This document shows, piece after piece, positions 11,417 through 59,065 of a DNA stretch of 64,000 nucleotides (positions within the stretch are counted from its first letter, which is position 1; each line of letters starts with the position of its first letter). The notes under the pieces are model-generated. The model was given only the letters and a program-made list of their open reading frames with translations. It was not told where the DNA came from and ran no database searches. The translations under genes were made by a program, and so were the position numbers. Source of the DNA: Basidiobolus meristosporus CBS 931.73 (taxonomy: Eukaryota > Fungi > Basidiobolomycota); the NCBI GenBank assembly GCA_002104905.1, contig MCFE01000261.1, forward strand, positions 45,623 through 109,622. Reading direction: 5' to 3'.

Positions 11417-11434
11417 AGAAAATGGTGTTGATCC

Positions 11435-20536: not shown

Positions 20537-21421
20537 ATGACTTACTCATCTGAATGGTCTTTTCTCATCAATCCCATCACTACCACTGGATTTCCTTTTG
20601 ACACACTAGAGGAGATCTATTCCAAGTACTGTGGACCATCAACCCCAATCTACTCAAGGAGATCCCTTGTCAAGCTTCTCTGCTATTACAAGAGCTATTG
20701 CCCTACAAGGTTTCATCCCACCATCCATGGCAACAAAAGTCCTAGAAGCTTTCATTCCCAGCTGACAGCAATGGAGAACCACCTTGCAGAGGGTATGAAT
20801 GACTTAGAGCAAGCTTGGAATACTAGGTTCAGAAGCTCCAATAGACTTCCATATCCCAGAGTGTTCAGCAACAGGTTCCATATCAGGAGTATTTTGGATA
20901 CCTTCCCAGTGAGGATTAACAGACCTTCTAGAGGGCAGAGACACTTTTATTCTGGAAAGTACAAGGCACACTGTGTGAAGTTTCAAGCACTGTCTGACAT
21001 TGAGGGTAACATCATCTGGTTTAGTGGGCCATTTGCTGGAAGTAGGCATGACAAAGCACTCTGGGTAGAGAATCATCCTGAATTCAGTAGAGGGGAGAAA
21101 TGTATGGCAGACTTAGCTTATATAGGAGAGGATTGTCAGAGATTAGGATATATTACAGCTTATAGGAAGCCAAGGAATGGTGTACTTAGCAGGAAGCAGA
21201 AGCTCTACAATGAGATATTTAATCATTTCAGAGTAAGGGTAGAGCACACATTTGGATATCTGAAGAGATTCAGCATATTGGCAGGTAATTACAGAGGAAA
21301 GTCATATATAGGAGAAAACAGCAGAATAGGTAAAATAGTTAAGATACTTATTAGTGCACAGTATGTTCATACAAGAAGACATCCACTGAGAGAAATGTGT
21401 CTGGAGCATTATGAAGAGTAA
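20537..21421 (+). CDS. DDE_Tnp_4-type (IS5/PIF-Harbinger-like) transposase, 294 aa
   Basis: ILDTFPVRINRP, QRHFYSGKYKAHCVKFQ, GSRHD, MADLAY, RVRVEHTFGYLKRFSIL: complete D-D-E triad. Confidence 0.92.
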   Translation: MTYSSEWSFLINPITTTGFPFDTLEEIYSKYCGPSTPIYSRRSLVKLLCYYKSYCPTRFHPTIHGNKSPRSFHSQLTAMENHLAEGMNDLEQAWNTRFRSSNRLPYPRVFSNRFHIRSILDTFPVRINRPSRGQRHFYSGKYKAHCVKFQALSDIEGNIIWFSGPFAGSRHDKALWVENHPEFSRGEKCMADLAYIGEDCQRLGYITAYRKPRNGVLSRKQKLYNEIFNHFRVRVEHTFGYLKRFSILAGNYRGKSYIGENSRIGKIVKILISAQYVHTRRHPLREMCLEHYEE

Positions 21422-21607
21422 ATAAAGCAAGGAAAGCACTATTCTGAGCAACATAAGTAAGATTGAGTAAAATTACCAGTAGCTGTATCATACCACAGGC
21501 ATCATGGTAGAAATTATAGTGCCAGATAGTGCCGTAGAGTGCCAGATCAATCTGGCACCATAAACAGGCTGGCACTATGTGGCACTATCCAACGGAACAA
21601 GTCTATT

Positions 21608-22518
21608 GTGATGATCCTGTCAAAAGGCCATCACAGATGCTAAGTCCTGTGACTAAGAGGTATTGTTTCTATCAGGACACTGTGCAAAGACCATCAAAAG
21701 ATAATTGCACCCCAGATATCATAAAGAACTTAATCAAAATATTTTATCACAACAATACAAAAGTGGCTTTTGATTGATTCTCTGCCAATTTTCTCACTTT
21801 CTGATCCTGGACACTCTATCACCTCCTACATTTGTGAGTATATATTGACTATTGCCTCTTTTTCACATTCCTTGCTACCTGACTCAGCTGTTTCTCTTAT
21901 TTTTCATGCAAACAAATTGACTTATTTCAGTTGAAACTCTATATGATCCTCAATAGCCAGTTGTATTGACCTATACAAGTCCCTATACCCTACACTAGCA
22001 TTAAGCCAAACCCCACACTCAAGAAGCAACTTCATTAAGATCCACCACTCAATAACCCAATGAAAATTATTGAGATGGTCCAGTCAAAAGGCTGTCACAA
22101 AGTTAAAGTCTCATGACTAAGAGGTACCGATCCTATCAGGGTACCATCCAGAGACCGTTGAAAAATAATTGCACCCCAGATTTAACAAAAAACTTAGTCA
22201 AAATCTTTCATCACAACAATGTATAAGTGGCTTTTGATTGGTTCCCTACCAATTTGCTTGCTTTCTGATCCCAGACACTCTATCACCTCCAATGTTTGTG
22301 TGAATTGATTGGCTATTGCCTCTTTTTCACACTCCTTACTTCCTGACTCAACCATTTCTCTTACTTTTCATGCGCACCTGTTGATTTATTTCTGTTGAAA
22401 CTTCAGTTGTACCTCAATTGCCAATTGTATTGACATATACAAGTCCCCAAACCCTACACTAATATTAAGCCCAACCCCTCACTCAACAAGCAACTCTATA
22501 AAATTCACCACTCAATAA
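21608..22518. repeat. Tandem duplication of a unit of about 464 bp
   Basis: GTCAAAAGGC at 21619 and 22083; CACCACTCAATAA at 22043 and 22506. A related motif is at about 44000 on the opposite strand. Confidence 0.85.
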
Positions 22519-22519
22519 G

Positions 22520-25500
22520 TATTTCTGCTGTAACACTCTGGTTCCACAACTTTGGCAGGAGCCCAATGGCTTTATGCCACTCTTCATTCACTGGTACCCA
22601 CATGTCCTGGCCTTCAGCCAGCACTGTAAGGTCTAGCACCTCATCTGCCAGTCCTTGCAATATTCCAGTGGGTTTTCTTGAGCACTGCTCTTGAAGAAGT
22701 GCTGCAACCTCTTTGTGTTCCTATTGATGTTCCAAAACTCCACTGAAGGCATTGTGATAGTCTTTTGAGCTCTTGACATTGTAGCTTTGTCTGTGAGTGG
22801 GATCTCTACTCTATCAACAATAGAGGATGTGGAGGCTGTGGTAGATAAGTTGTCTTTTTCAGCAAACTCATCTACCTTGCGGGAGTGTAGCTCAGCCGGC
22901 TGTGCTTCCAACTCTTGTGAACACAGCTGTTTTCTTGATGGTAATTCTTCTGGGCTATGATGGGATTCAGTCTGTTCCTGGCTTGCGGTGTTAATTGGCA
23001 AGAACTGCAGTTTTTTCTGTATGCCTCCCTGTCTCAGGCTTGAATAGACATTTTCCCTTTACCTCTTCCTTTATTGCTGCTAGGTCTTTCACTGCTACTT
23101 CGTCTGAGTGCTTCTTGTAAAGAACTACATTTTCTCCTGGATAAATTCTGCTCTGACGCATCTGTTTTGGCCTGCTCGTCACTTGCTGGTACTCTTACAG
23201 CAGCCTAGGGTTTCTTTTTTGCTTGTTTTGAGCTCTCAACCGTAGTTGTGACAGGCTCCTGTGAAAGTGGCTGGTTTTTTTCACTGCCAGGCTCTTCACT
23301 GCTACTTTGACTGGGTGCTTCTGGAGTGGTACTATGCTTTTTCCTTGATAAGTGTTGTGCTGGTGCATCTGTGTATGCCTACTTATCCCTAATTGGCACT
23401 CTTCCAGCAACCTGATGTCTCTTTTATGCTTATCTGTTGCTTTTGGCCCTGCCTGTAACGGGCTCTTGAGGAAGCCACTGGTTTTTAGCCATGGTACTCT
23501 TGTTCTTTTGTCTGTGATAGTTTCTGCTATTCTTAAGATACTTTCTTGCATACCAAAATTGGCCCAAAGTCTGTTTGCCTGTTTGAATCCAGGATAATGC
23601 TTATGGAACAAGTCAAGTGCATTCTGCTAGGCCTTCAGTTCCTGATGGTTCCATGGTATGCTGGCCTTAAGGTGATGGCATGCTAGACTTCTGACAACCT
23701 CTTGTATATTAGCCCACTGTTCATTATTGCATTCAATGGCTTCACAGATCTTGAATATCTTTTGATTATAGGCTTTGGTATAAATTCCACATTGTCTCCC
23801 TCCCTTGCTGTGATAGGTTATTATGTGGGCTTTATCTTTGGGCACTGTTGTTGTGCTTCAAAGACTGTACAGTACTCCTCTGCCACTACAATGGGAAGTG
23901 GCTCAACTCCTGGCTGTGACATTGAGCTACTTGAGTTCCTTCTTTGCAGCAAAGATATTGCCTTCTCTACCTGGGATATTGATTACTCTACACATATTAC
24001 ATGCTCATCCTGTTTCTAGACTATTTCCTGATTTCTCTGGGCCATTGCATCTATCCTATCAGCCACTGCACCTATATGCTTCATTAATGCTTTGGTATGA
24101 GCTGACAACATACTTGCTAATATGGGTGTAGTACTGTTATCATGGCTGCTTGCTAATCTTTAGCTGAGGGTACTGCATTTACTACATACTCATCTGCCTG
24201 AGAATAATGGTCAGCTTGTGGCTCCACAGAGGTTCTCATTGCCTACTTGACTAAGAACCTGAGGAGTCTGCATTATTACCTTCAATGGGCACACTGCTCA
24301 CAGGGCCTTTTTTGGGTGTAGCCCCACTTGTTCCACTGAGTGTCAAAGCAAGCTGTTGTCCAACCACTTTTCTGCTGCCATCAGTGGTGGCATTTGGTTG
24401 AAAACCACACAACTTTGCTTTATTTTTTGGTGGCATATATATGGAAGTGAGTCAAACCTAAGGGGAAATAGTGTTACATTTACGTAGGTATGTGGTGCCA
24501 GAACTTTATTCATAATGCTTACTATGGCAGGTCATCATTAAATCTTACATTCATGTAGGTGCAGTGTCTCTAAGACAAGACTGTGTCAAGTTCGCATGAG
24601 TATTGACCAAAAAGTGATATAACAGTGTTACATTGCTGAAGGTCAAACTTTTTGCCCCCTGGACAAGACTACTTTGACTCAACACCATAAGAGAAGAGAA
24701 AAACAACCATGTGGCTATTGTGGCAAGCCTCTCAGACATGAAGCACACAAACAGCATAGAAAGTATTACAAGGTTCATGGCTAGTTTTTTGCCACCCAAG
24801 TCATATTTGACCATTCATTGGGCACTACTGTACCAACATTATCTTACCAGTCAGTTGATACTTCTATATTGGCACCTGGCCATCTTTGTCACCTTGCGGA
24901 AACTGAGTCAGGAGAGCTTGTGATGCCTCTAGGCTCACCTCAGCCTTCTGATTTTGGGATGCATAGTGATAGCTTTGACAAGGAAGGTTCACTGATGGAT
25001 TTTGAGCCTATCTCCCCTAACAACAGTTCCACATATGAGCCCAGTCAAATCCCTATATAAAATGAGACAACACCTGTAGAAACAAAAGCCAAGGATACTT
25101 TATGGAGCCAAGTAAGCCCAGTAATCCATCTATTGGTAAATGATGTAATGTTGTGGCTAGAAAAGTGGCACATTTCCACTAATATCAGTAATGGGGGCTT
25201 TGAGGATTTATTACTACTTCTTGCTAAAATCATACCAGGATGCAACTTACCATGTACATGGTACAAGTGGACAACCATTCTGCGGCTGGCAACATATGAT
25301 CCAGAGACTATCCTGATTCCAGCATGTGTTAACAGTTGCATGGCATTCACATCCAAAAATGCTACCATTGCAACATGTCCAAATTGTCAGGAATCCACAG
25401 CCATTGAGGGAAAACATCATTCACACACCAGATACATTCTGGTCATACCCTTTCTGAGGAAGCTGATGCAGTCCAACAAATATTGCAAAGCTATACAGTA

Positions 25501-26291
25501 CCACACTCAGTGTCAATCAAGTACAAACATATCCAATATATTTGATGGCAAACATCACAAACAGCTACAAAGCAAGGGCTAATTTGAAGATACGTATGAC
25601 TATGCCTTTGCTTTAGCACTTGATGGATTCTCATTAAACAAGTACTCAACCAGAAAATCCTGCTGGCCAATGATTCTCATCAATCTGAATCTGTCACCCA
25701 TCTTATGGTATTAGAGCAATAATCTGATGGTAGTCTCACCAGTATCTGGGCCTTAATCACCATCCAGCCTGGATGGCTACCTGTATCCATTGCTGGATGC
25801 ATTTTGTATGCTTTCTAGCATGGTAACAGTAAATGATCATCATGTAAAGCACATATTTTTATCTGCATTGAAAATACCCTTGCCATCAGCAAGATAGCGG
25901 GTTTTTCCAGGCACAATGGACAGTATTGCTATTGAATGTTTGAGATCCAGGGGACTTACTCCATAACTCACACACATTATTATTGCCCAAACACCAGCAC
26001 TAAGAACATCATCTTTCCACAGTGAGAATGTCCAGAAGTAAGCATGCAATTGCAGCAAAGTTGGCAAGCTATAAGCCATTGGCCAGAATCTGGAAGCAAT
26101 TGGACACTGGAGATACTTAAGATAGAGGGTATCAGTTAGAGCAAAAGCTTTGCACTGAAACAATACATTTGCTTTTCAACAATAACCCTACACTGATGAC
26201 CAAGTTGTACATGGGGGTTTTTAAGCTAAATGAGCCCTTTGAGATACTGGAGAAATTTGAAAGAATTGGCAAGATATTACAGAGTATCTGC
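22520..26291. mobile_element. CACTA/CMC-like element copy 1 (accessory ORF on -, transposase on +), decayed
   Basis: Plus strand: ACVNSCMAF..ATCPNC, SNIFDG, ALALDGF, SCWPMILINLNL, SGP.SPSSLDGYLYP (Transposase_21-like). Divergent second ORF MPPKNK...PWNHQELKA...HYPGFKQANRLWA. No TIRs found. Confidence 0.75.
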
Positions 26292-27373
26292 TGTTGCAAT
26301 TTAAGAAGTGATTTAGATATTAGGAACTTATCAAGAAATAGTGATAATAGTTGAACTGTTGTTTATTCATAAAGAAGCTCAGTATTTATACCTTTGTAGA
26401 AGTAATACAGCAGCAACACTAAGTAGGGAGGGCTTCTCAATATTCAGGAGCATTCTCTAACAGTTTCAGGGTTAGTACATAATGTTTGGTAATAGTGCTA
26501 ATTTAATATTGACTATAGGGGAATAATCATAAGATCATATATCTGCAGAAAGTGGCAAAGTTAAGGCAGTAAATGGGTCCTACAGTGACTAAGACTAGTC
26601 TAGAATTGTTAAGTAAATTTTTAGCTGCTGAATGATACCAAATAGTCCAATATTTCAACACTCCCCTGCAACTAAATAATTTCTTAATCCCAATTTCTCT
26701 CTAAGGATCTCAAACTGTGGCCTAGCTAGTGGTTTTGTCAATATGTCTGCCACCATTTTGTCAGTTGGGCAGTAAACTAGCTCCACTAAGTTATTTTCTA
26801 CAGATTCCCTCACAAAGAGATGCTGTATATCAATGTGGTTAGTTCTGGCATGATTAGTAGGATTTCTAGCTAATGAAATATAACTTTGATTTTCCTTGTA
26901 AATACATGTTGGTTCACCTGAATTAAAACCTAAGTCTTTGAATAATTTTTGTAGCCATAAAGCCTCCTTAGTTGCTTGACATGCAGCCATATATTTGGCT
27001 TCAGTTGTAGATAGTGCCACAGTTGGTTGTTTCTTGCAATTCCAAGTAATAGCTGCACCAGCATAAAGAAATACATAGCCTGTGGTAGAGCGTCTGTCAA
27101 TCAGATCCCTACCCCAATCTGAATCACTATAACCATCAAATTTTTGCCTATTAGCTACTCCAGAGTATTCCAGTACCATATTTATGGTACCTTGTAGATA
27201 TCTGAAAATCCGCTTAACTGTTGTAATTTGATCTGATCCATAATTCTGCATGAATTGACTGACTATTCCAACTGCTACTGCAATAACTGGATGTGTAGAC
27301 ACCATCAAGTATATAAGGCTACCAACCATTGATTGATAGGGAAAGTTTTGGTCCATATTTGGTTATTTTTCAT
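26292..27373 (-). mobile_element. 5'-truncated Copia A (RNase H plus 3' LTR 26292-26660)
   Basis: ORF 26655-27356 is nearly identical to the C-terminus of 33213-37130; 369-bp LTR with PPT. Confidence 0.95.
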
Positions 27374-30317: not shown

Positions 30318-30863
30318 AATATACCAACTTATTGATTAGTGTGATCACTGCTACCTGCTGCTACCTGAGCTTCCAACCCCAAACCACAGGACACTCCCAG
30401 GAAACCACGCTGATAGCCAACTGACCTTGGAGGCACTACTTGTGAGGAATACTAAGAGTAAGTATCTTTTACTATATTTGATTCTTTCCCAAGTTTGTTT
30501 GTGTACAGGCAAAGATACTTTTCTGTCTTTGTAACTATTGACCACAGCTGCACTCTTATCAAGTCCCTGCTGGTGGAGCTTACAGTTGTTTTGTCTTTGG
30601 AAGCTTTAGTACATTGTCATCTTAAAGGAAGCTGAACCCAGTACATACTTTTGTTAAGACACCAACTAAGTCGGGAATTGTGGCTCAATAGTTTTCCCTA
30701 GACCAGCTTGTGGCTTTATTCCCCATCATATTAGATTAGAGACAGTACCCAAGTATTCCTAGCAAGCTTTTGCCAGAGGCTATTGAACCCAGTGAGTACC
30801 CCACACACAAAACACTTGAGAAGCATTAGACTGATCTCTCCCTTGGACTTATACACCACCACA
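30318..30863 (+). mobile_element. 3' half of LTR family D
   Basis: Matches 54545-55089 and ends ...CACCACCACA. Confidence 0.75.
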
Positions 30864-33176
30864 CTGCATTATTACTTTCAGTGTGCACACTGTCCACAGA
30901 ACCTTTTTTGGATGCAGCCATGCTTGTTGCACTGAATGTGCAAGCAAGCTGTTGTCCAACCATTCTTCTGTTGTGGTCATTGGTGGGTTTTGTTGAGAAC
31001 CAGAAAACTTTGCTTTATTTTTTGGCAGGATATATATGGAAGTGAGTCAAACCCAAGGGAAATAGTGTTACATATACCTGTGTATATGGTGCCACATCTC
31101 TACTTATAATGCTTACTATGGCGTGTCATTGTTGAATTTTACATCCATGTATGTGCAATTTCTCAAATATAAGACTGTCTTATGTTCAGATGAGTGTTGA
31201 CCAAAAAGTGATATAATAGTGCTACATTGTGCAAGGTCAATCTGTTTGCCCCATGGACAAGACTACTTTGACTCAACACCATAAGAGAAGAGAAAAAAAA
31301 TTATGTGGCTATTGTGGCTAGCCTCTCAGCCATGAAGCACGCTTAGAGCATGGGAAGTATAACAAGGATCATGGCCAGTGTTTTGCCACCCTAGTCATAC
31401 TTGACCATTCATCAGTCACTAATGTACCAACATTATCTTGCTGGCCAGTTAATACTTTCATATTGGCACCTGGCTGTCTTTGTCACCTTGCGCAAACTGA
31501 GTCAGGTGAGTTTGTGATGCCTTTAGGCTCACCTCAACCTTCTGAATTTGGCATGCAGAGTGATAGCTCTGACAAAGTAGGTTCACTGATGGATTTTGAG
31601 CCTATCTCCCCTAACAACAGTACCATGTATGAGCCCAGTTAAATCCCTATATATAATAAGACAACACCTGTTGAGACAAATGCCAAGGATAATTTATGGA
31701 GCCAAGTAAGCCCAGTAATCCATCTACTGGTGAATGACGTAATATTGTAGCTAGAGAGGTGGCGTGTTGGCACTAATATCAGTAATGGGGGCTTAGAGGA
31801 TTTGTTACTGCTTCTTGCTAAAATCATACAGGGATGCAACTTACCATGTACATGGTACAAGTAGATAACCATGATGCGGCTGGTAACATATGATCCAGAG
31901 ACAGGAAGCTGATGCAGTCCAACAAATATTGCAAAGTTATATTGTACTATGCTCAGCATTAATCAAGCGCAAACACATCCAATATATATGATGGCAAACA
32001 TTACAAACAGCTACAAAGCAAGGGCTACTTTAAGGATATGTATGACCGTGTGTTTGCATCAGCACTTGATGAATTTGCATGAAACAAGTACTCTCCCAGC
32101 ATATTCTGCTGGCCACTGATTCTCATCAACCTCAATCTGTCACCCATCTTATGGAATCAGAGCAATAATCAGATGGTAGTCTCATTAACATCTGGGCCTA
32201 AATTGCTGTCCAACCTGGATGGCTATCTGTATCCATTCCTGGATGCATTTTGTATGCTTTCCAGCATGATAACAGTAAATGATCATCATGTAAAGCACAT
32301 ATATTTATCTTCATTGTAGATACCCCAGCCATCAGCAAGATGGCAGGTTCTTCCAGGCACAATGGATGGTATTGTTGTCAAATGTGTAAGATCCAAAGGA
32401 TACACTCCATAACTCACACACGTTATTATTACCCAAACACTAGCACTAAGAAAATCATCTTTCCACAGTGAGAACATACAGAAGTATGCATGCAATTGCA
32501 GCAAAGTTGGCAAGCTATGAGCCATTGGCTGGAATATGCAATCAATTGGAAACCAGAGATACTTAAGATAGAGGGTATATGTAAGAGCAAAAGCTTTCCA
32601 CTGGGAGCTATGCATTTGCTTTTCACCAATATCCCTATATTGATGACCAAGTTGAACATGTGGCATTTCAAGCTAAATGAGCCCTTCAAGGTAGCAGAGA
32701 AATCTGAAAGAACTGGTAAGCTATTAATGAGTATCTGCTACCCTAAGTACTCCTCACAGGCTCCAATTAATATTCATATGTATATGCTACAATACAAATG
32801 CAAAGACTGTTGAAATATTGGACTATTTGGTATCATTCAGCAGCTAAAAATTTACTTAACAATTCTAGGCTAGTCTTAGTCACTGTAGGACTCATTTACT
32901 GCCTTTACTTCGCCACTTTCTCAAGATATATGATCTTATGATTATCCCCCTATAGTCAGGATCAAATTAGCACTATTACCAAACATTATGTACTAACCCT
33001 GAAACTGTTACAGAATGCTCCTGAATATTGAGAAACCCTCCCTACTTAGTGTTGCAGCTGTATTACTTCTACAAAGGTATAAATACTGAGCTTCTTTATG
33101 AATAAACAACAGTTCAACTATTATCACTATTTCTTGATAAGTTCCTTATATCCAAATCACTTCTTAAATTGCAACA

Positions 33177-33189
33177 GGTTATGAGCCCC
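33177..33189 (+). promoter_or_regulatory. Primer-binding site complementary to the tRNA-iMet anticodon stem-loop
   Basis: GGTTATGAGCCC directly abuts the LTR end; complementary to GGGCTCATAACC of fungal initiator tRNA. Confidence 0.85.
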
Positions 33190-33212
33190 GATTGCCTTAA
33201 TCTATTCTAAAG

Positions 33213-36200
33213 ATGACTTCTACCAGCAAACAAAGCAATACCAACATCTTCCCTGTAAAGGAGAGGTTTGATGGGAAGAACTACAGACTTTGGAGAATCA
33301 AGATGCAGATCCACCTTGAGGAAAGAAAGCTTTGGAATATAGTAACAGGAAAGGAAGTTGAGCCCAAAGGAACAGCAGAAGATGTGGAGAAGTTTCAAGA
33401 GAAGGAGAGAAAGGCCTTCAATGCAATATGCATCAATGTGCAAGACTCCTTCATTGGACAAATCCATGCCTCAAATACTGCCAAAGCAGCATGGGAATCC
33501 TTGGAGAAGATCTTTAGAGCAAAGTCAGTATCAAGCAAGCTTTATTTGAAACGAAAGTTCTTCAACATGAGAAAAAAGCCAGATGATGACATGCTACAAC
33601 TCATTACCAGAATGGAGACACTTGCAGAAGAACTTTACAGTATTAATGCTGGTGTAGATGATGAAGAAAAGATACTCTGTCTGCTTTGCAGCCTACCAGA
33701 CGAGTATGAGCCACTCATACTTTCTTTTGAAAGCAGAGAAGACAACTTGACTTTAGACTATGTCAAAGGAAGACTTCTCCATGAAGAACTCAGACGTAAT
33801 GACCAAGCAGAGAAAATTGAAGATAATGCTTTATTCAGTTCAGAAAGGCATACAGAAAAGAAGGGAAAGCAACAAAACCGAAGAAAACCTGGCTGCTGTA
33901 ACCACTGTAAGAAGCCAGGACACTGGGCAAGAGAATGCAAGAAGAAACAAGCAGACGAAAAACAGAAACTAGAGCAGGCAAACCATATAACTACTGATGA
34001 ACAGCTATTTGTCACTGTACAAGAGAGTGCAAGTAACCAAAGTAATGAATGGTATATTGACTCTGGAGCATCACAGCATATTTGTGGTATAAAGGATTGG
34101 TTCAGCAACTTAAAGACTATTCCCGTAAGAAAGGTTTATCTGGGAGATAACTCTGCATTGGAAGCTACCGCCAGTGGGTCCATACAACTAAATATGAGTG
34201 ATAACTCAGGGGCAACAACAGCAAAACTGACTGACGTACTCTATGTACCTGGAATAGCTAAGAACCTACTCTCAGTCAGTAAAGCAACTACTCAGGGACT
34301 GAAATTTGTTTTTACTAAGCTGAGCTGCTCAATATTGAGTGAAAATGGACAAAAATTAGCTTCGGGAATCAGAGATCACAATATATACAAGTTACAATGC
34401 AAGATCATTGTACCTGAGTATGTCAACATTGCTGAAACCGATGAAACCAACTGGGAGATGTGGCATAGGAGGCTAGGACACATAGGGGAACAGAAAATGA
34501 GCCAATTGGTGAAAAATCAGCTTGTTTTGGGCCTAAAATACTCAATTCCGATCAAATTGAATGTTTGTAAAGGATGTTCATATGGCAAACAAGCTAGGCA
34601 ACGTTTCAAGAGCTCAGAAGGCATCAATACCACCGAAATATTGGCTATTGTACACTCAGACATATGTGGCCCCATGAGAACACTGTCCTTTGGAGCCAAG
34701 AGATACTTTATGACGTTTATTGATGACAAGACAAGATATACATGGGTGTACTTCCTCAAAACAAAGGATGAAGCTTTAGAGACGTTTAAGCACTTCAAGA
34801 ACATGGCAGAAACACAAACTGGGTGTAAATTGAAGGTACTACGAAGTGACAATGGAGGAGAATACTGCTCAAAGGAGTTTGCAAAATACTGCTTGTCTAC
34901 TGGTATACTTCAACAGACCACAGTTCCTCATACTCCACAGCAAAATGGAGTAGCAGAACGTGCAAACAGAACAATAGTAGAGATGGGAAGATCTATGCTA
35001 CATGATAAGGGAATGGACTACAAGTTTTGGGCTGAATCTGTTGCTACCGCTGTATACATCAAGAACAGATGCCCAACAACAGCACTACGTGATTCTACAC
35101 CCTTTGAAGCATATACAGGCAAAAAACCAGATCTCCAGCACCTCAGGATCTTTGGCAGTGATGTTTTTTATCACATCCCTGACAAAAAACGCTCAAAGTT
35201 GGAACCAAAGAGTAGAAAAGGGATCTTTCTTGGGTATTGTGAAGGTACTAAAGGGTATAGAGTGTATGATGGCGAAATTCAGAAGCTGATCAAGAGCAGG
35301 GACGTTGTATTTGAGGAGAATTCAGATCAGAAAGCCACAGAAATCATTGGCCAGCTGCCTGATGATGCAATCAACACAAATGAAGAAGATACGTACCAAA
35401 TCCAGCCAGAGATGGAAGATACTTCTACCAGTTCCAGATCAGAACAGATTATCCCAGTTAGGAGATCTACCAGAATAAGAAATGCCCCTGGATCCTGGTG
35501 GCAGACATCCAATGATCATGAAGAAGCTTATCTTGCCTTATGTGCCGAACCTCAGAATCTGGAACAGGCAATGCAAGGTCCAGATGCTACTAAGTGGCAA
35601 CAAGCCATGCAGGAGGAGTACCAATCACTGATCAAGGCAAAAACGTGGGAACTGGTAGATTTACCAAATGGGAGAAAGCCAATAGGATGTAGATGGGTCT
35701 ATAAGATCAAGATAACCTCAAATGGTGCCGTTGATAAGTACAAGGCTAGATTGGTAGCTAAAGGCTATTCCCAGATCCAGGGACTAGACTTTAAGGAAAC
35801 ATTTGCTCCGGTTGCCAAGTTTAACTCTATTAGGACAGTTCTAGCCCTGGCAGCTGTACACAGTCTAGATCTACACCAAATGGACGTCAAAACAGCCTTT
35901 CTAAATGGGGATTTGCAAGAAACTATATATATGGAGCAACCAGAAGGTTTTACCGATCCAAAAAGCCCCCATAAGGTGTGCAAACTTAGAAAATCGTTGT
36001 ATGGGCTTAAGCAGGCACCCAGAGCATGGTATAACAAGATTGACACATATCTAGAGGAAATTGGGTTCTCTCGTAGCACTGCAGATCACAGTATATATGT
36101 GAAACAGCTCAAAAAGGGTGTGATCATCCTAGTTCTTTATGTGGACAACCTAATTATAGCTACAAGTGATCAAGAGGCACTTAAACAGACGAAATCAGAT

Positions 36201-37130
36201 CTCTTCAGCAAGTTTGAGATGAAAGATCTTGGAAAATTGAGCTATTTTCTTGGAATTGAGGTCAAATTTGACATACCTACGCAGAAAATTGTGCTGAATC
36301 AGTCTAAGTACATCAGGGACATTCTTAGACGCTTCAAAATGGAAAATTGCAAACCTGCAGCAACCCCTATGGACAATAACCTGAAATTAAGCAAATCTCA
36401 GCCAGTTATGGATGAAAACGGCTCAAATATGGACCAAAACTTTCCCTATCAATCAATGGTCGGTAGCCTAATGTACTTGATGGTGTCTACACGTCCAGAT
36501 ATTGCAGTAGCAGTTGGAATAGTCAGTCAATTCATGCAGGATTATGGATCAGATCAAATTGCAGCAGTTAAGCGGATTTTCAGATATCTACAAGGTACCA
36601 TAAATATGGTACTGGAATACTCTGGAGCAGCTAATAGGCGAAAATTTGATGGTTATAGTGATTCAGATTGGGGTAGAGATCTGATTGACAGACGCTCTAC
36701 CACAGGCTATGTATTTCTTTATGCTGGTGCAGCTATTACTTGGAATTGCAAGAAACAACCAACTGTGGCACTATCTACAACTGAAGCCGAATATATGGCT
36801 GCATGTCAAGCAACTAAGGAGGCTATATGGCTACGAAAATTATTCAAAGACTTAGGTTTTAATTCAGGTGAACCAACATGTATTTACAAGGATAATCAAA
36901 GTTGTATTTCATTAGCTAGAAATCCTACTAATCATGCCAGAACTAAGCACATTGATATACAGCATCACTTTGTGAGGGAAGCTGTAGAAAATAACTTAGT
37001 AGAGCTGGTTTACTGCCCAACTGACAAAATGGTGGCAGACATATTGACAAAACCACTAGCTAGGCCACAGTTTGAGATCCTTAGAGAGAAATTGGGATTA
37101 AGAAATTATTTAGTTGAGGGGGAGTGTTGA
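33213..37130 (+). CDS. gag-pol: Copia Gag-Pol polyprotein, 1305 aa (RT motif YVDN)
   Basis: Gag (FDGKNYRLW), CCHC knuckle CNHCKKPGHWAREC, protease WYIDSGAS, HHCC plus DDE integrase (VHSDICG, RSDNGGEY, QQNGVAER), RT (KARLVAKG, LKKSLYGLKQAPR-type motif) and RH (YSDSDW, TEAEY, DNQ, ADILTK). The stop codon is supplied by the LTR TGTTGA. Confidence 0.97.
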   Translation: MTSTSKQSNTNIFPVKERFDGKNYRLWRIKMQIHLEERKLWNIVTGKEVEPKGTAEDVEKFQEKERKAFNAICINVQDSFIGQIHASNTAKAAWESLEKIFRAKSVSSKLYLKRKFFNMRKKPDDDMLQLITRMETLAEELYSINAGVDDEEKILCLLCSLPDEYEPLILSFESREDNLTLDYVKGRLLHEELRRNDQAEKIEDNALFSSERHTEKKGKQQNRRKPGCCNHCKKPGHWARECKKKQADEKQKLEQANHITTDEQLFVTVQESASNQSNEWYIDSGASQHICGIKDWFSNLKTIPVRKVYLGDNSALEATASGSIQLNMSDNSGATTAKLTDVLYVPGIAKNLLSVSKATTQGLKFVFTKLSCSILSENGQKLASGIRDHNIYKLQCKIIVPEYVNIAETDETNWEMWHRRLGHIGEQKMSQLVKNQLVLGLKYSIPIKLNVCKGCSYGKQARQRFKSSEGINTTEILAIVHSDICGPMRTLSFGAKRYFMTFIDDKTRYTWVYFLKTKDEALETFKHFKNMAETQTGCKLKVLRSDNGGEYCSKEFAKYCLSTGILQQTTVPHTPQQNGVAERANRTIVEMGRSMLHDKGMDYKFWAESVATAVYIKNRCPTTALRDSTPFEAYTGKKPDLQHLRIFGSDVFYHIPDKKRSKLEPKSRKGIFLGYCEGTKGYRVYDGEIQKLIKSRDVVFEENSDQKATEIIGQLPDDAINTNEEDTYQIQPEMEDTSTSSRSEQIIPVRRSTRIRNAPGSWWQTSNDHEEAYLALCAEPQNLEQAMQGPDATKWQQAMQEEYQSLIKAKTWELVDLPNGRKPIGCRWVYKIKITSNGAVDKYKARLVAKGYSQIQGLDFKETFAPVAKFNSIRTVLALAAVHSLDLHQMDVKTAFLNGDLQETIYMEQPEGFTDPKSPHKVCKLRKSLYGLKQAPRAWYNKIDTYLEEIGFSRSTADHSIYVKQLKKGVIILVLYVDNLIIATSDQEALKQTKSDLFSKFEMKDLGKLSYFLGIEVKFDIPTQKIVLNQSKYIRDILRRFKMENCKPAATPMDNNLKLSKSQPVMDENGSNMDQNFPYQSMVGSLMYLMVSTRPDIAVAVGIVSQFMQDYGSDQIAAVKRIFRYLQGTINMVLEYSGAANRRKFDGYSDSDWGRDLIDRRSTTGYVFLYAGAAITWNCKKQPTVALSTTEAEYMAACQATKEAIWLRKLFKDLGFNSGEPTCIYKDNQSCISLARNPTNHARTKHIDIQHHFVREAVENNLVELVYCPTDKMVADILTKPLARPQFEILREKLGLRNYLVEGEC

Positions 37131-37854
37131 AGTATTGGACTATTTGGTATCATTCAGCAGCTAAAAATTTACTTAACAATTCTAGGCTAGTCTTAGTCAC
37201 TGTAGGACTCATTTACTGCCTTTACTTCGCCACTTTCTCAAGATATATGATCTTATGATTATTCCCCTATAGTCAGGATCAAATTAGCACTATTACCAAA
37301 CATTATGTACTAACCCTGAAACTATTACAGAATGCTCCTGAATATTGAGAAACCCTCCCTACTTAGTGTTGCAGCTGTATTACTTCTACAAAGGTATAAA
37401 TACTGAGCTTCTTTATGAATAAACAACAGTTCAACTATTATCACTATTTCTTGATAAGTTCCTTATATCCAAATCACTTCTTAAATTGCAACAAAGACTA
37501 TATGAACTGGATACTTATCTATTGAAGTGGCGTTCTGAAGCCTTTCCTACCAAGAGTACATTGGAAGCATTGGGAGTCATATGTGGACATTGTAGAAATA
37601 TTCATCCAGAAGCAGATCACCAATGCCAACTTGACACTTCTACAGCTGTTGTGTGAGGAGTCTGTGACCGGATATGAGCGGCTAAGCTACAAACATAAAG
37701 CTGAATGTGCAGATCTCTGCCACTACTGTATCCATTCTCTACCCCATCTTGCATGATGTGTGGAGAATATTGGGCCTTGCTTCACCTTTTGGGAGTTTTA
37801 GCCTGTTTTCACTAGCTTTTCAATATCTTGTTTCATTCTAGGCCACAATGTACT

Positions 37855-38475
37855 GGCTTCATCCTGGATTACCATCTTGATCTCCTCATCCACCTCATTA
37901 GGAGTGGCTTGATCCTCCAAGTAGTGTGGTAATAGGCTAGGCCAATCTGATTCTTGCACTAAGTTGAGTTGAGCAACTTGTTCTTATTGTGAGAATGCAA
38001 TAGCAACCATGTTGTTTTTTGCAGGGTAGTAGACAATCACCAAATCAAATTGCTAATGTATTCACTCCATCTTGTCATACTTCTGTATAGTACCTTCTGA
38101 GTCAATATAAACTTGAGTGAGGCATGATCAGTCTTCACAGTGCTCTTGACTCCTTCAATGCAGCATCTCCAGGTCTTCAAGCAGTGTATCATGGTAAGCA
38201 TCTCCTTCTCATGCACTAGATTGTTTGGTTCTACTGAGTTCAGTTTTTTGGACTCAAAAGCAACTGGCCAGTCCTTTCCTTCACGTTCTTGGCCCATTAT
38301 TCCACAAATTACATAGTCTGAAGCTTTTGTACCCAGAGTAAACTCTTTTCTGAGGTCTGGGATTCTCAAGCTTGGCAGCTTAGCAAGTTCATTCTTGAGC
38401 ATCTGAAAGTCAGTCTCACAGGCTATGTCCCACTTCATAGCACTGTTCCTCTTGAGATTATCAGTTAAAGGGTTT
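37855..38475 (-). mobile_element. Gypsy RT-RNase H remnant (distinct from the 10.7-14 kb element)
   Basis: FTLGTKASDYVICG...PVAFESKKLN...HEKEMLTMIHCLKTWR...KTDHASL. Confidence 0.85.
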
Positions 38476-38479
38476 TATC

Positions 38480-39400
38480 TAATAGAGGAGCAAACTGTAA
38501 GGCAAAGACATTGGAAGCTTACCTGGAAATGGAGTGGATCAGACACTTGAAAACCTTGGCATATTACCCTAAAACTGATGGAGTCACTGAGTAGTTTAAT
38601 TGATTATTTGGAGAAATGTTGACCAAGTATGCAAATGGAGCCGTCAGTGGATGAGATGAGTTTATAGACAAAGTACTTTTTGCATGCAGAGTTAGAGTAC
38701 ACAACACCACCCAACAATTGCAATTTACTTGGTGTTTGGATGTGAACCAAGGATTCCAGGAGATCCCACACAACCAAAGCTTACCAACATCTTAGGGCCA
38801 TGACTATGTAGAAGTACTAGGGGCCTCCATATTTGGAAACTATATATTTGGCCTGGAACTTGGATAAACATGGCTGTTCAACTGTCATCCATCATTCCAT
38901 TAAAGAATCCAAACTACTCAGTTCTAAAATGGCAACCTGAGCTATGAGCTACTACCTGCCAGACCAGATTTCAACTCAGGCAATTCCAGTCAGTTGGACA
39001 TGAACAGACTTAGCAAGACACAGTTTGGTAGACACCTCAGAAATGGCACTCAGATGCTTTGTATGGTGTTATTACAGGATGATACTCTGCTCCAGTCATC
39101 CATGGAGCAAAGACTCCTCTCAAGGAATATGCAGACTTGTTTTTTGATCAACTGGAAGCCTGCTGCCAGTTAGAGATGTGCATCATGACATCTACACAGG
39201 AAATTGCTCCCCAGTGAGCAAGACACCATGCAGGATGAGTCCATTGGAGTTGGAAGAATTAAAGATACAAATTGATGAAATGTTGGAGCAAGAATACCTG
39301 ACCTAAACTGGTCACCTTGGGGAGCACCATGGCTTTGAGTGAGAGTAAGGATGGATTACTAACAATGAGCATTTACTACAGAGCAGCATATTGTGTTTGT
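38480..39400 (+). mobile_element. Scrambled Gypsy integrase and RT N-terminal remnants
   Basis: TDGVTE.FN..FGEMLTKY (IN); ELEELKIQIDEMLEQEY and SPWGAP (RT), in broken frames. Confidence 0.6.
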
Positions 39401-39759
39401 GAGAAGTATAAGCACCCCAAACATGGATTTGTTGTGATATGCTGCTTGAGTGCATAAGTGAGAGCAGTTTTTAGTCAAGTCAATCAGCTTTATATTTGAC
39501 CTATGAGCTTATTAGTATTCTCTAACAAATAAGTATAATTAGTCATCAGATGAATAAGCAAATCCTTATTATGCAGAAATGAATATGTCAAGGAAGATCA
39601 TAAGGGGTGATGATGATACAGATAAATGAGTCATCTGCAACAATCTATTGCATAATACAAGTTGATCTTGCAATATGCACATAAGTAGCTGCAAGAACCT
39701 CAATTAAGATCAGTTTAAGTTTTAGTGAATATATAGATAGCTCAACTCTCAGTTCCTCT

Positions 39760-42700
39760 ACACCCATATATCAAGATCTGCAACAGGTGTTCTGTTTCTG
39801 GACAACTATTACTGCAATGTCAGCGTATGATCCTCCATGCTTCCAATATACCCTAGGTAGAAACTTTTTCAGTAAGCCCATTCAATCAATAAATATCCAG
39901 TTTGACCAGTCCTTGCATTTGTATTAGTGTATATGAGTATATGTGTTCACTGGAGTCTGCATTAAGTATCTTGGTGAGCAGATACTCTGTCTTTGCTGTA
40001 ACTACATGCTGGTTATGATATGTTCTCTCTGTGCAAACATGATGTTCTTGGTGCTGGTTCTAAAATAATTCTAATGTGTGTGAGCTATGGAGTAAATCCC
40101 CTAGATCTCATATATTTCACAGTATGCACTTTGATATGACAGCTACTTTGCAGTATCCAGTTAGAAAGCACACTGAATCCATCCAACAATGGGTTCATGT
40201 AGCCGTCCAGGTTAGATGGTTATTAAGGCCCAAATATTAGTGAGACTACCATCAGATTTCTGCTTGAATACTATAGGATGGGTGGCCAATTCAGGTTGAT
40301 TAGAACTATTGGCCTGCAGGATTTGCAGGTAGAGTACTTTTTCATCAAGAGTCTATCAAGTGTCAAGACAGAGGCATGGACATACACACCATCCATATAG
40401 CTCTTGTTTCTTAGTTGCCTGTAATATATGCCATTAAATATATTGCAAATGAGTGAACAGCATTGATTGGCAAGAATTGCAGCTTTTTTCTCACACTTGC
40501 TTGTCTCTGGCTTGGGTATGCTTTTTTCCCTTTACCTTTCCTTTATCACTGCTAGGTCTCTTACTGCTACTTTGGCTGAGTGTGTCTTATATTGCACTAT
40601 GCTTTCTCCTGGATAAATGCTGCTCAGATGCATCTGTTTTGGCCTACCTGTCTCTTGCTGGCACTCTATGGGCAGCATGGTGCTACTTTTCTGCTTGTTG
40701 TGAGCTTTCAGTCCATGCTGTGATGGGCTCCTGAAGTAGCTGCTTGTCTTTATCACTGCCAGATCCTTTACTGTTACTTCAACTGAGTGCTTCTTCAGTA
40801 GAACTACACTTTTTCCTGAATAAATATTAGGCTGGTGCATATGTGTCTACCTGCTTTTCCCTTAATGGCACTCTTCCAGCTACCTGATGTCTCTTTGATG
40901 CTTGTTTCAAGCTTTTGGCCCTGCTTGTTACCTGCTCTTGAGGAGGTCACTGGTTTTTAGCCATTACACCCTTGTTCTTCTCCTTCTGATAGCTTCTGCT
41001 ATTCTTACTGTACTTTTTAGCATAGCAATGCTGGCCTAAAATATGTTTGCTTGTTATAATCCTAGAAAATGCTTATGGAGCAAGTCAAGCACATCCTGCT
41101 TGGCCTTGAGTTTCTGATGGTGCCATGATATGCCAGCCTTAAGGTGTTGGCAACCTAGTCTTCTAATGGCCTCCTGAAGATTAGCCTGCACTTCATCATT
41201 GAAATCAACAACTTCACAGATCTTTGATCTTTTTTGATTTTTAGGCTTTAGTATAATACTCTATTTTCTCCCTCCCATGCTGTGATTGGTTCTTCTGTAG
41301 GCTTCATCTTTGGGCACTGTTGTTATGCTTGAGAGACTGTGTGGTGTTCCTTAGCTTGTACATCAGAAAATGGCACAATTCTTGGCTGTAACATTGAGCT
41401 TCTCAAGCTCCATCTTTGCAGCGGAGATAATACTTCTGCTGCCTGGGATATCAATTGCTCTACACCATTTTTCTGCTCATGCTGTTTCAGGACTATTTCC
41501 TGATTTTTCTGGGCCATTGCATCTATCCTATCAGCCACTGCCTCTAATTGCCTCATTGATACTGTGGTAAGAGCTGACACATATTAGCTAACTCAAGTGG
41601 TGGTGATGTTATCATAGCTGCTTGCTGGTCTTCAATTGAAGGTGATGCATTTGCTGTATTCTCATCTGCCTCAGCAATATGGTCAGCTTGCGGCTGTGCA
41701 GGGATTTTTAACTGCCTACTTGACTACAAGCTTGAGGAGTCTGCATTTTTACATTCAGTGGGCACACTTTCCACAGGGCCTTTTTGGGATGCAGCCCCAC
41801 TTGTTGCACTGAATGTAAAAGCAAGCTGTTATCCAACTGTTCTTCTGCTGCTACCAGTGGTGGGGTTTGGTTGGGTGCCAGACAACTTTGCATTATATTT
41901 GTGGCATATATATAAGAAGTGAGTCATACTAAAGGGAAACAGTGCTTCATTAATGTGTGTATACGGAGCCACAACTCTATTTACAATTGCTACTATGGCT
42001 GATCATCATTGAATCATACATTTGTGTAGGTATAATGTCTCAAATACAAGACTACCTTAAATTCACACTGGTATCTGGGCCTAAATCACTGTCCAACCTG
42101 GATAGCTACCAGTATCTATTGCTGGACAAATTTGATATACTTTCTAGCAGGATATCAATAAATGGGTGTCATATCAAAGCACATATTATGATATGCATTG
42201 GATATACCAGCTATCAGGATAATAGCTGGCTTTTCTGGGCACAATGAGCAGTATTGCTGTCAAACATGTGAGATCCAGGGGACCTACTCCATAACTTACG
42301 CACATTATCAGTACCAAAACACCAACAGTGAGAACTTCATCTTTCTGCAGAGAGAATGTACACAAGATAGCATGCAATTGCAGCAAAGCTTTTAGATACC
42401 AGAGAAGTATGAAAGAATTGGCAAAATACCACAGAGTATCCACTACCCTGGGTACTTGTCACAGGCTCCAATCAATATTCATGCACATATTCAACAATAA
42501 TTGTGCTAGGACTGGATGAACTGGATAGATATTTATTCAAGTGGCCTTATGAGGCCACTTCTACCAAGAGTACATTGGAAGCATTAGGAGTCATATGTGG
42601 AGATTGTAGGAATAATTATCCAGAAGCAGATCACCAATATCAACTTGACACATCTACAGCTTTTGTGCAAAGAGTTTATGACAGAATTTGAATGACTATG

Positions 42701-43900
42701 TTACAAGCATAAGGCTGAGCATGTAGATTGTTGCTGCTAATGTATTGATTTGTTACTCCATCTTTCTTGGTGTTTTGAAAATAGTGGACATTGCTTTACC
42801 TTTTGGGAATTTCCTATAGAGCAGATATGTGGGGAGCAAGGAAGTCAAGTCCAGTTGCTAGTACTACCATATCCCTATCTCATCAAGAATAGTATCTTAA
42901 AGTTCATCATGAGTGTCTTGAGTTGGCGCATAAAGAACCGCCAGGAAGAGTTGGAAAATACTGAGGACAGATGTGCATATAGAGACACCTGTTTCTATGG
43001 CATTTTAAAGCTATGCAGCCACAATGCATGGGTAATCAGTTAAGTAATGGAAAGTTGTGTTGGGTGCAATCAGCAACTAATTTTTATTAGTAAAACTCTA
43101 CTAAAGTATGCTGAGTTTCTCTTGGTCATAAACTAATTTCTATACTATTTAATATGAAATTCACACAAACCTAAGCTAAAATGCACCTATAAGGGGGACT
43201 AGAATCCTTCAGGGCAAAGGAATATATTGGCCAAGTACCAAAAATCTCTTGGCTGACATTCAGGAGGTATTCATGGCAGAAGTGGTGGCAACCAAGCATA
43301 TACCTGCAAGATGTATAGGTTACCAGCAATACATGGTATATGGCAACTTTGCAAGTATCACACTTAAAAGCTGTAAATTGAGGTGATAGTAATATGCCAA
43401 TTGTGGCAGGTGTGCATATTAGTAGAGGTTGGTAAACAGGAGACAGTAGTATTTTGTGATTTGAACTACATGTGGAATACCCAAGGTAGTAATGGGTAAG
43501 AAAATAAAGAGGAGTGATACTTCAGTGGAATATATGAATTGTTAAAGGGGAGGTAGAAAAAGGAAATATTATTTGGAAAGTTAGTACAGTATCATTATAT
43601 TGAGTCAGCTGTAGGTTGCAATACTGCTGTAATAGTGCCATCAAAGGCTTGCAATGAAGCCATCTAAACACCCTCAAGTTTTTCTCCATATAAGGCAATT
43701 GAATTTACTTGGGGGTTAGATCCACTCAAATAGTTGCAGAGCTCACTAAGACTGCAACAATGCATGCTACTCTAGGCAAAACACTGTGCAAACACTGTTA
43801 TGTTTTTTAATTTTATTTGGCGGTAAAATTAGCCAAACACTATTGTGATCTTGACATAAGATTGTGTAGATGTTCACAAAATCCAAGCCACCAGCATTAT
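39760..43900. mobile_element. Composite CACTA-like copy 4 (inverted transposase piece, accessory ORF, internally deleted transposase with C-terminal region)
   Basis: 39760-40450 is the reverse complement of the transposase; 40460-41890 is the accessory ORF (-); 41900 onward is transposase with a deletion at about 42060 and FTFWEFPIEQICG (W.FP.ER.CG motif). Boundaries approximate. Confidence 0.7.
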
Positions 43901-44375: not shown

Positions 44376-44902
44376 TGTCATGATCACATGACATCCCTGG
44401 TCTCTGGTGCTCAAGCTAAATCAAGTTGCTGAAGAAATTCCAGTTCCTTCTAGAAAGTTGTACTACATTCTAGCAACTTCTGGAAAGTTGCAAGTCAATG
44501 TTACATAATTGAACATTCTATAGACGCTCCCCTTTGGAATTTGAGTAGCCAGATACCATATATTGTAATTGCATGTCACATAACCTAGTCACATGATCAG
44601 CTAACCCCTAGCATATCTCATGCGGTATTCTAGACTGTTCTTTAGTATATTTCTACCTTGGCACACTTACTGTGCCTTATTCTAGAGCCCCATCAGTATT
44701 AGCCAATATCTCTTGGCATCCATAATGCCAATAAGTATAAATAGTCCTTTCCCCCTTATGTATTCCTCAGCCTGATAAATACAGGTCTTGAATAAACTGC
44801 CTTGTATTGGAGATCCTCCTTGCCTTGTTGATCCACACATAAGTCCTTTCTTAGTCTTGCCTTGCCTAGCTCTACTCTCCTGCCTTATGTCTTTTTATAA
44901 CA
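44376..44902 (+). mobile_element. Solo LTR family C without matching TSD
   Basis: Homologous to 17200-17746; flanks are ATTTC and CATTC and belong to different elements. Confidence 0.8.
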
Positions 44903-47900
44903 CATTCTTCATTTTTGCGCTTAATGTCTTCACAGATCTTCAATCTCTTTTTATTTTGATGCTTGTGTATAAAGATAACAGTCTCTCCCTATCATGCTGC
45001 AATATGCTTTTCTGTGGACTATATCACTGGGCAATATTATTTTGCTTCAAAGACTGTATGGTGTTCCTCTGCAATTAAAATGGGAAATAGTACAGCTCTT
45101 TGATGTGATATTGAGCTACCTAAAGTCCTTCTTTGCAGCTTGGATACTGTATTTTCTACCTGGGATATTAATTGCACCATATGCATCATCTGCCCATCTA
45201 GTCTCTGGACTATTTCCAGATTTCCTTGGGCCATTGCTTCTATTCTATCAGCAACTGCTCCTAGTTGCTTCATCAATACTTTGATATGAGCTGACAATAT
45301 ACTTGCAAATACCATTGGTGGAGATGTTATGATGGTCATTTGCTGGTCCTCCACTGGAGGTTTGGCATTTACTTCATTCTCATCTGCCCAAGTATAATGG
45401 TTAGCTTATGGGTCTGCAGAGATTCTCAGTTGCCTACTTCATTGAGAACTTGAGGAGTTTGCACTGTTATCTACAGTGGGCTCACTGTCAGCAGGGTCTT
45501 CTTTGGAGGTAGTCCCACTTGTTGCATTGAATGTGAAAGCAAGCTTTTGTGCAACCATTTTGCTGCTGATGTTTGAGGTGGGGCCTACTTGGGAACTGGA
45601 AAACTTTACTTTAGTTCTTGGAAGCACATATATATGAAACTGAGTCAAACCAGAAGAAAAATAGTGTTATATATTGATGTGCATCTGTTGAGATATTGGA
45701 CTATTTGGTATCATTCAGCAGCTGAAAATTTACTTAACAATTCTGGACTAGTCTTGGTCACTGTGGGACTAACTTACAGCTCTAACTTTGCCACTTTCTT
45801 CAGATGTATGATCTTATGATTATTCCCTTATAGTCAGTATCAAATTAGCACTATTATTAAACATTATGCACTAACCCTGAAACTGTTACAGAATGCTCCT
45901 GAATATTGAGAAGCCCTCCTTACTTAGTGTTATGGCTGTATTACTTCTACAAAGGTATAAATACTGTGCTTCTTTATTAATAAACAACAGTTCAACTACT
46001 ATCACTATTTCTTGAAAAGTTCCTTATATCCAAGTCACTTCTTAGACTGCAACAGTAGCTGATGCCAAGGCTGCATTTATAATGCTTAACATGGTAGGTC
46101 ATGATTCTTGCTTTCTTGTGGGCTTAATGTCTTAAATATAAGACTGTCTTAAATATAAGACTGTCTTAAAATCATCTGAGTATAAGAAAAAAGATACACA
46201 ATAGTGCTAGGTTATTGAGTCTCAAGCTGTTTCCTCCATGGATAAGACTACCTGGATTCAATGCAATAAGAGAAGGGAAAAACAATCATGTGACTATTGT
46301 AACAAGCTTCTCAACCATGAAGCATGCAGACAGCATAAGAAGTAACACAAGGATCATGGCTAGTGTTTTGCCACACAAGTCATATTTACTACTGTATCAA
46401 TAATATCTTTCCAGCCACTTAATACCTCAAAAATGGCACCTAGCTATACTTGTCACCTTCAGCTAACTAAGTTGGAGGAGCTTGTGAAGCCATTTGGCTC
46501 ACCTCAGCCTTCTGAACACAGCACAAACAGTGCAAAAGACTCCCTGATGGATTGTGATTCAAGCTCCCCTCACCACAGTATCCTGCATGAGTCCAGCAAA
46601 AGTTCAGTATGTGATGAGACAACTCCTGCAGAAAAATGCAAGAATACTTTATGGGGCCTATTCAGCCCAGTAATTCACTTGCTGGCAAATGATGCAATGT
46701 TTGGGCTAGAGAGTAGGCATACTTCCACCAATATCAGTAACAAGGGCTTAGAGGATTTGGATATTTCTTGCCACAACCATTCCAGTTTGCATACCATGCA
46801 CTTGGTATAATTGGAAAGCTGTTATGCAGCTGGTAACATGCAGCGCAGAGACCAATCTGATACCAGAATGTGTTAACAATTGCGTAACATTGACATCAGA
46901 AAATGCTACCATTGCAAGGTGTCCAACTTGTCATGAATACACCACTGAATGAGGAAACATTGTTTACACCGCAGATATATTCCAGTAATACCCTATCTAA
47001 AGATGCTCATGCATTCTCATAAGTAGAGCAAAGCTCAAAAGCACCACATTCAGTATCAGTCAGGCATAGGCATTTCCAATATGTTTGATAGCAATTATGA
47101 CAAACAGCTAAGAAGCAAGGGCTACTCTGAAGGTATATACTAGTAAATGAATGTCATGTCAAAGTGCAAACTATTAGCTGCATTCAAGATACCCCAGCCC
47201 TCAGCAAGGTGGCCAGCATTTCTGGGCACAATGGATGGAATTGCTGTCAAATATGTGAGACTCAGGGGATTTACTCATAACACACATACATTCCTGTTAT
47301 CCAGACACCAATTATAGGAACATCATTGTCTCACAGAGAGAATATATAGAAGTCAGCATGCAACTGCAACTAAGCTGGTAAGCTACAAGCCATTGGCCAG
47401 AATACAGCATTAATCAAAGCCAGTGGTACTAAGGATTGAGGGAATCTGTTGGAGCAAATGCTCTCTGCTGGGAATATTGAGTTTACTCTTCAGCAATATC
47501 CCAATGCCAATGACAAAGTTGTACACCAGGTATTTCAAGTTAAGTGAGGCCTGTGAGATACTGGAAAATTTTGGAAGAATTGATAAGAAAATACAGTGTA
47601 TCTGCTACCCAAGGTACTTCTCACAAGCTCTAATCAGTATTCAAATGCAAATGAATTGATTCAAATGCAAGGACTGGATGAGCTGGATATGTGTTTACTT
47701 ACGTGGCCTTCTGAAGCAACTTCTACACAGAGTACATTGGAATCATTGGGACAAATATGTTGACTTTGAAGGAACATTTATCTACAGGTAGACCACTAAT
47801 GCAAAATTTAAACACTTACAGCTTTTAGGCAAGGAGTCCAACACAGTATATGAATTGCTATACTACAATAATAAAGCTGAATGTGTAGATCTATGCTGCT

Positions 47901-47985: not shown

Positions 47986-47989
47986 GATG

Positions 47990-59000: not shown

Positions 59001-59065
59001 AGACAAAGTAGCAGTGAAAGACCTGGCAGTAATAAAGAAAAAGGTGAAGGGAGAAGAGTCTATCT

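Follow-up and report, generated by a model that had tools for sequence, protein, structure and literature searches.

The 64-kb window analyzed here, by which we mean the whole stretch of Basidiobolus meristosporus DNA at its full length, is a dense nest of transposons. Self-comparison of the window revealed at least two lineages of copia-type LTR elements, referred to as Copia A and Copia B, and one further repeat, assigned below to the CACTA type, that is present as seven partial copies that are 70–86% alike. Pieces of gypsy elements and a PIF/Harbinger-type element are also found (table 1), and one of the gypsy pieces, an integrase, is interrupted by a solo LTR of Copia B at 11435–11783 that is flanked by the duplication GATCC.

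Three smaller repeats were also observed in the window. A piece of ~540 bp occurs twice (17202–17750 and 44378–44906, 80% alike), in contexts and orientations that differ relative to the CACTA accessory region, and may be a small mobile element. Two tandem units of ~450 bp (21604–22055 and 22068–22518, 80% alike) fall in the gap that separates CACTA copy 1 from the Harbinger-type element. Finally, an element of 1.07 kb with TG...CA ends, which is probably the solo LTR of a third family, is present as a full copy inside the second Copia B element (Copia B-II), and the 3′ half of a second copy (30318–30863, 91% alike) adjoins CACTA copy 3 at 30863/30864.

Table 1. Coordinates of the features discussed in the text (positions within the 64-kb window)
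Feature	Position	Strand	Remarks
Gypsy fragments	10823–12408 and 37799–39785
Gypsy chromodomain integrase	10823–12408	minus
Gypsy RNase H	38037–38438	minus
PIF/Harbinger-type element	20537–21421		DDE_Tnp_4
CACTA copy 1	22516–26291	+	accessory-gene side, intergenic repeats, transposase; cut off at the first insertion site
Copia A, inverted and truncated	26292–27361	minus	3′ LTR 26292–26660 and ~700 bp of the pol end
CACTA copy 3, left of Copia A	30864–32807	+
Transposase_21 matches, copy 3	32083–32316 and 32283–32468	+	profile positions 47–104, then 121–155
Insertion stretch, copy 3	32731–32807	+	transposase-frame coding sequence (...LLMSICYPKYSSQAPINIHMYMLQYKCKD)
Copia A, full-length	32808–37493	+	LTRs 32808–33176 and 37125–37493
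CACTA copy 3, right of Copia A	37499–37798	+	homologous up to 37798; a gypsy fragment follows
CACTA copy 7, partial, inverted	39786–40472	minus	unoccupied over the stretch
CACTA copy 4 over the stretch	42394–42830	+	unoccupied; ~180-bp deletion just upstream
A-like solo LTR	45686–46054		in CACTA copy 5
CACTA copy 5 over the stretch	47414–47988	+	unoccupied
Copia B-III, truncated	from 47989
Copia B-II	about 50341–56039		carries the 1.07-kb insertion at 54020–55089
Copia B-II 5′ LTR	55695–56039	minus	complete, positions 1–349 (349-bp LTR)
CACTA copy 6	56040–59065	minus	between Copia B-II and Copia B-I
Transposase_21 matches, copy 6	56583–57095 and 56337–56573	minus	profile positions 35–83, then 115–158
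Copia B-I	59066–63750		LTRs 97% alike

The host repeat and its copies

A first-pass annotation of this DNA had named the host repeat a CACTA transposase. Stop-free pieces of copies 3 and 6 match the Pfam model Transposase_21 (Tnp2), and the matches run colinearly along the profile in these two separate copies; the best of them has an E value of 3.6e-5, and all scores (14.6–23.5 bits) lie below the Pfam cut-off of 28.6. Because the colinear order recurs in two copies, though each match is below the cut-off, we regard the repeat as likely to encode a Tnp2/CACTA-type transposase, and the earlier name can be kept at that strength. The frame downstream presumably resembles the DUF4218 part of plant Tnp2 proteins; a Pfam search of this frame returned no match, and neither did a word-based protein search with the 170-aa CACTA ORF.

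The copies are decayed, with many stops and frameshifts. Element ends, that is, terminal inverted repeats of the CACTA or CCCTA type together with a short target duplication, were not found for any of the copies in the window. The starts of copies 1 and 2 coincide at one internal position of the consensus (22516–22530 and 27378, respectively), and the two copies have different left neighbors. Homologous sequence in copies 3, 4, and 5 breaks off at nearly one point, within a range of ~25 bp midway through the transposase frame (...GPCFTFWEF), at 37798, about 42830–42850, and 47988, respectively. Given the lack of element ends, the common start, and the near-common stop, the CACTA copies are dead internal fragments. 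These common end points were not made by any integrase, which suggests that the copies descend from one truncated fragment that was spread by duplication and not by normal CACTA transposition. Four of the copies share their orientation within 26 kb. Copies 7 and 4 (39786–40472, minus, and 40457–42830, plus) lie head to head and have the same left deletion break point, equivalent to 26060 in copy 1, with ~180 bp deleted in copy 4 and ~220 bp in copy 7; they therefore form one deletion subfamily.

Three Copia insertions within 69 bp of the transposase frame

The first-pass annotation had placed three Copia junctions close together in the transposase, and reading of the junction sequences confirmed all three. 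In copy 1 the CACTA sequence ...GAGTATCTGC runs to 26291 and is followed at 26291/26292 by the end of an inverted Copia A LTR, TGTTGCAATTT; positions 370–1 of LTR A match 26291–26660 at 96%. The inserted piece is 1.07 kb long, is 96.4% identical to 37493–36424 of the full-length Copia A (92.7% at the protein level over aa 1072–1305), and is separated from the next CACTA copy by 16 bp of filler. In copy 6, which is read on the minus strand, CACTA sequence ...CAGGCTCCAATC continues down to 56040, and position 1 of LTR B lies at 56039. Copy 3 carries the full-length Copia A between two copies of a 5-bp target duplication, AAGAC, at 32803–32807 and 37494–37498.

The element in copy 3 is a Ty1/copia LTR retrotransposon: its LTRs are 369 bp long, 98.9% alike and end in TGTTG...CAACA, the target duplication is 5 bp, and the coding order is gag, protease, integrase, and RT. 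An intact ORF at 33213–37130 encodes a gag-pol polyprotein of 1,305 aa that matches the Pfam models Retrotran_gag_2 (aa 31–198), rve (aa 479–575), and RVT_2 (aa 810–1053) with E values down to 3e-84. A search of 5.8 billion clustered proteins with this polyprotein gave no relative that exceeds 47% identity, and the Copia A lineage is thus essentially absent from the protein collection that was searched. Scans of metagenomes with the end sequences of LTR A and LTR B gave no match. Copia B-II lacks a matching target duplication, with GAAAT to the left and GATTG to the right. Its two LTRs agree at only 88%, and the sequence to its left belongs to another Copia B, the truncated Copia B-III; Copia B-II thus has the appearance of a recombinant of two elements.

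To compare the three sites we aligned the six copies that cover the stretch (1, 3, 4, 5, 6, and 7) with MAFFT, using copy 3 as a computationally joined empty site. Projected on copy 3 the insertions lie at 32738/32739, 32768/32769, and 32807/32808, which correspond to alignment columns 208/209, 238/239, and 277/278, or 0, +30, and +69 bp; the sites are thus homologous, as had been proposed, and span 69 bp. The stretch is occupied in three of the six copies (1, 3, and 6) and uninterrupted in copies 4, 5, and 7, and a tblastn search of the window found no further copy that covers it.

The three insertions are independent events. The LTRs of families A and B have no DNA similarity to each other, and the polyproteins are 44–60% identical. 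The insertions also differ in age, with the LTRs of the full-length Copia A 98.9% alike, the fragment in copy 1 at 96% to the full element, and the Copia B-II LTR at ~89% to the LTR of Copia B-I. Duplication of a single insertion event, which the first-pass annotation had already argued against, is ruled out by the differences in position (30 and 39 bp apart), orientation, family, and age. Because the CACTA copies themselves are 14–28% diverged, the insertions took place after the copies had separated. Two of the three junctions, those in copies 1 and 6, are one-sided, the second flank and the duplication being gone, so that only the intact LTR end speaks for the action of an integrase in these two copies.

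The stretch itself lies ~110 codons past the last matched position of the Transposase_21 profile. An open frame runs through it in copy 3 (32472–32807) and in copy 6 (56336–56040) and is recognizable in all copies. The stretch is therefore coding sequence, and a reading of it as an intron or spacer is ruled out by this continuous frame that is common to the copies.

Clustering and the search for a mark

Altogether, seven intact LTR ends adjoin CACTA sequence in the window. In addition to the three described above, these are the Copia B-I junction in copy 6, flanked by the duplication TATCT at 59061–59065 and 63751–63755; an inverted Copia A-like LTR end that adjoins copy 5 at 44159/44160 after ...CTTCTCTC; the A-like solo LTR in copy 5; and the junction at the left edge of copy 3 (30863/30864). 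The second hotspot listed in the first-pass annotation could be read directly from these junctions, since the site at 44159/44160 and the Copia B-I site are only 10–11 bp apart on the alignment. This second cluster lies at the margin of the CACTA element's accessory-gene side. Both clusters are thus in the same CACTA family, and each has been struck by both Copia lineages.

To estimate how often such clustering arises by chance, we simulated random placement of six (Copia) or seven (LTR) events over the CACTA sequence of the window (15.8 kb), with weights set by per-position copy coverage. Three events fall within 69 bp with a probability of 0.018 for the six Copia events and 0.031 for the seven LTR events, and nearest-neighbor clustering of all six to seven junctions, which includes the pair ~10 bp apart, has P ~0.011. 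The sample consists of seven events, all within the window, and the stretch was picked post hoc, after looking. Since it was picked in this way and such an event is expected somewhere among the ~1,700 windows of the genome that were read, P values of 0.01–0.03 do not establish targeting. Hence, of the earlier proposal of targeted integration, the part that stands is that the clustering is nominally unusual (P ~0.01–0.03); clustering of three insertions in 69 bp beyond chance is suggestive, and targeting is not established by a P value obtained inside one window. As a further observation, the spacings of 30, 39, and 10–11 bp are close to multiples of ~10 bp, or one helix turn. By a rough count the probability of this coincidence is roughly 0.03, which with three spacings is weak; the near-10-bp spacings would be consistent with integration into wrapped DNA from a single side.

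A local structural feature had been suggested as a cause of the clustering; among the features that we tested (AT content, hairpins, WW phasing, RNA genes, and shared motifs) no sequence or structural mark of the stretch was found. With 64% AT the stretch is at the 88th percentile within the element, and the second cluster is at the 39th; AT-richness was rejected as a cause because the stretch is only moderately AT-rich and the second cluster is not AT-rich. Single-strand folding of the three unoccupied copies in comparison with shuffled sequences gave no excess of DNA hairpin or cruciform structure (z 0.05, 0.17, and 1.6). The 10.2-bp periodicity of WW dinucleotides, a crude proxy for nucleosome positioning, was inconsistent among three copies (26th, 25th, and 89th percentile). 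No motif is common to both clusters (P = 0.45), and no common feature is evident among the duplicated pentamers, which are TCTGC and CAATC (both inferred), AAGAC, TATCT, and the GATCC of the Copia B solo LTR in the gypsy integrase. ARAGORN identified no tRNA gene and Rfam had no match anywhere in the window, and targeting of Pol III genes in the manner of Ty1 and Ty3 was dropped as an explanation, no tRNA or other known RNA gene being present in the window.

The Copia proteins were examined for a shared targeting module. The integrase C-terminal linkers of Copia A and Copia B have only the usual copia motif in common, and no chromodomain was found in either lineage by Pfam analysis of the Copia A polyprotein and comparison of the C-terminal linkers. 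The only chromodomain in the window is in a gypsy fragment (10823–11416).

Interpretation

Three independent Copia insertions share one 69-bp segment of the transposase coding sequence, each in a different dead, truncated CACTA copy, and we propose that this clustering could reflect a genuine preference of the Copia integrases for where they land at fine scale, a reading that we find about as easy to believe as to doubt. The preference would be for a local property of the stretch as it is packaged in the cell, such as its chromatin, a bound host factor, or the shape of its DNA; the sequence alone does not reveal such a property. The preference would add to a broader bias of these elements toward landing in, or being tolerated in, transposon islands, and would involve no tether to CACTA proteins in particular. 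As the insertions differ in age, any such landing bias would have to be long-lasting.

The main competing explanation is that Copia inserts approximately at random into abundant dead CACTA sequence, and that the clustered look of three of these insertions was flagged post hoc. This is a substantial possibility, although we consider it somewhat less probable than a landing preference. It draws on the in-window P values, which are only 0.018–0.031; on the amount of target, there being ~16 kb of CACTA fragments in the window and only seven LTR junctions; on the failure of every tested sequence feature to mark the stretch; and on the expectation that an event with a probability of 1–3% will turn up somewhere among ~1,700 windows of the genome. 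Pure coincidence has to contend, however, with the second tight pair, 10–11 bp apart and again involving both Copia lineages, which brings the overall clustering P value to ~0.01. A different kind of explanation is that the stretch is prone to breaks or deletion ends and that Copia cDNA or neighboring copies were joined to it during repair in copies 1 and 6. Several features of these two copies agree with this, namely, the survival of one flank only with the rest of the CACTA copy gone, the truncated 1.07-kb piece followed by 16 bp of filler in copy 1, and the recombined state of Copia B-II with its unmatched GAAAT and GATTG and LTRs that are 88% alike; moreover, break points that are not the work of an integrase coincide too, at the start of copies 1 and 2 and within ~25 bp at the ends of copies 3, 4, and 5. 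Nevertheless, the event in copy 3 is a textbook integration with a 5-bp duplication, the LTR ends in copies 1 and 6 lack not a single terminal base, a state that random breakage would seldom produce, and a full insertion followed by a later deletion accounts for copies 1 and 6 equally well, so that we regard a breakage hotspot as unlikely.

The first-pass annotation had also raised the idea of a tethering protein, and in the form of a protein that is encoded by or bound to CACTA and that recruits Copia integrase we consider it highly improbable. That both clusters are in the same element family, with both Copia lineages in both, is what such a tether would have in its favor. Against it, all copies are decayed, truncated at common points, and without recognizable element ends; the stretch is ordinary coding sequence and not a terminal or subterminal binding region; the insertions are spread over a long time; and the C-terminal linkers of the two integrases share nothing beyond the usual copia motif. 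A bolder version of the landing preference itself is that Copia picks its sites with near-base precision through the packaging of the DNA, for example, by fixed nucleosomes on repeated DNA, and that the spacings are the footprint of this packaging. We think this rather doubtful, if still slightly less so than a breakage hotspot.

Ty1 and Ty3 of yeast and TRE and DGLT-A of Dictyostelium are LTR or non-LTR retroelements that target RNA polymerase III genes; their integration windows are tens of base pairs wide, and the Ty1 pattern is nucleosome-phased. These systems need Pol III genes, whereas none is present in the window described here. Ty5, through a Sir4 heterochromatin tether, Tf1, through Sap1 and promoters, and the chromoviruses, through their chromodomain, target chromatin by means of an integrase C-terminal module. 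The silent-looking transposon nest in our window fits a heterochromatin preference in a general way; however, the preferences of Ty5, Tf1, and chromoviruses are regional or linked to promoters, whereas here the target is a stretch of coding sequence, and the chromodomain that chromoviruses carry is missing from Copia A and Copia B.

A landing preference of this kind would be in line with the documented nesting of LTR retrotransposons. In plants, LTR retrotransposons nest nonrandomly in other elements and favor particular regions of the host element, and independent nestings in separate copies are found at positions that are close but do not coincide; targeting and subsequent loss have both been put forward as explanations (Jedlicka et al. 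2019, PMC6911290). The plant study concerns LTR elements inserted in LTR elements, preferences at the level of domains and UTRs, and hundreds of pairs, whereas the present case concerns a fungus, a host that is the transposase ORF of a DNA transposon, a scale of 70 bp, and three insertions. At present the case amounts to a coincidence of three insertions that is well documented but statistically modest, and as an instance of the known pattern of nonrandom nesting it is suggestive.

If the clustering is confirmed genome-wide, it would represent a fine-scale Ty1/copia hotspot that is independent of Pol III genes and promoters and that lies inside the coding sequence of a DNA transposon, in a fungus that diverged early and has a genome enlarged by both types of element, and it would provide a handle on how retrotransposons choose harmless sites in repeat-rich genomes. 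Should the precision turn out to be set by packaging, the copies of a repeat family would all present one small set of landing spots, and the repeats of this early-diverging fungus would provide a natural record, genome-wide, of integration guided by chromatin.
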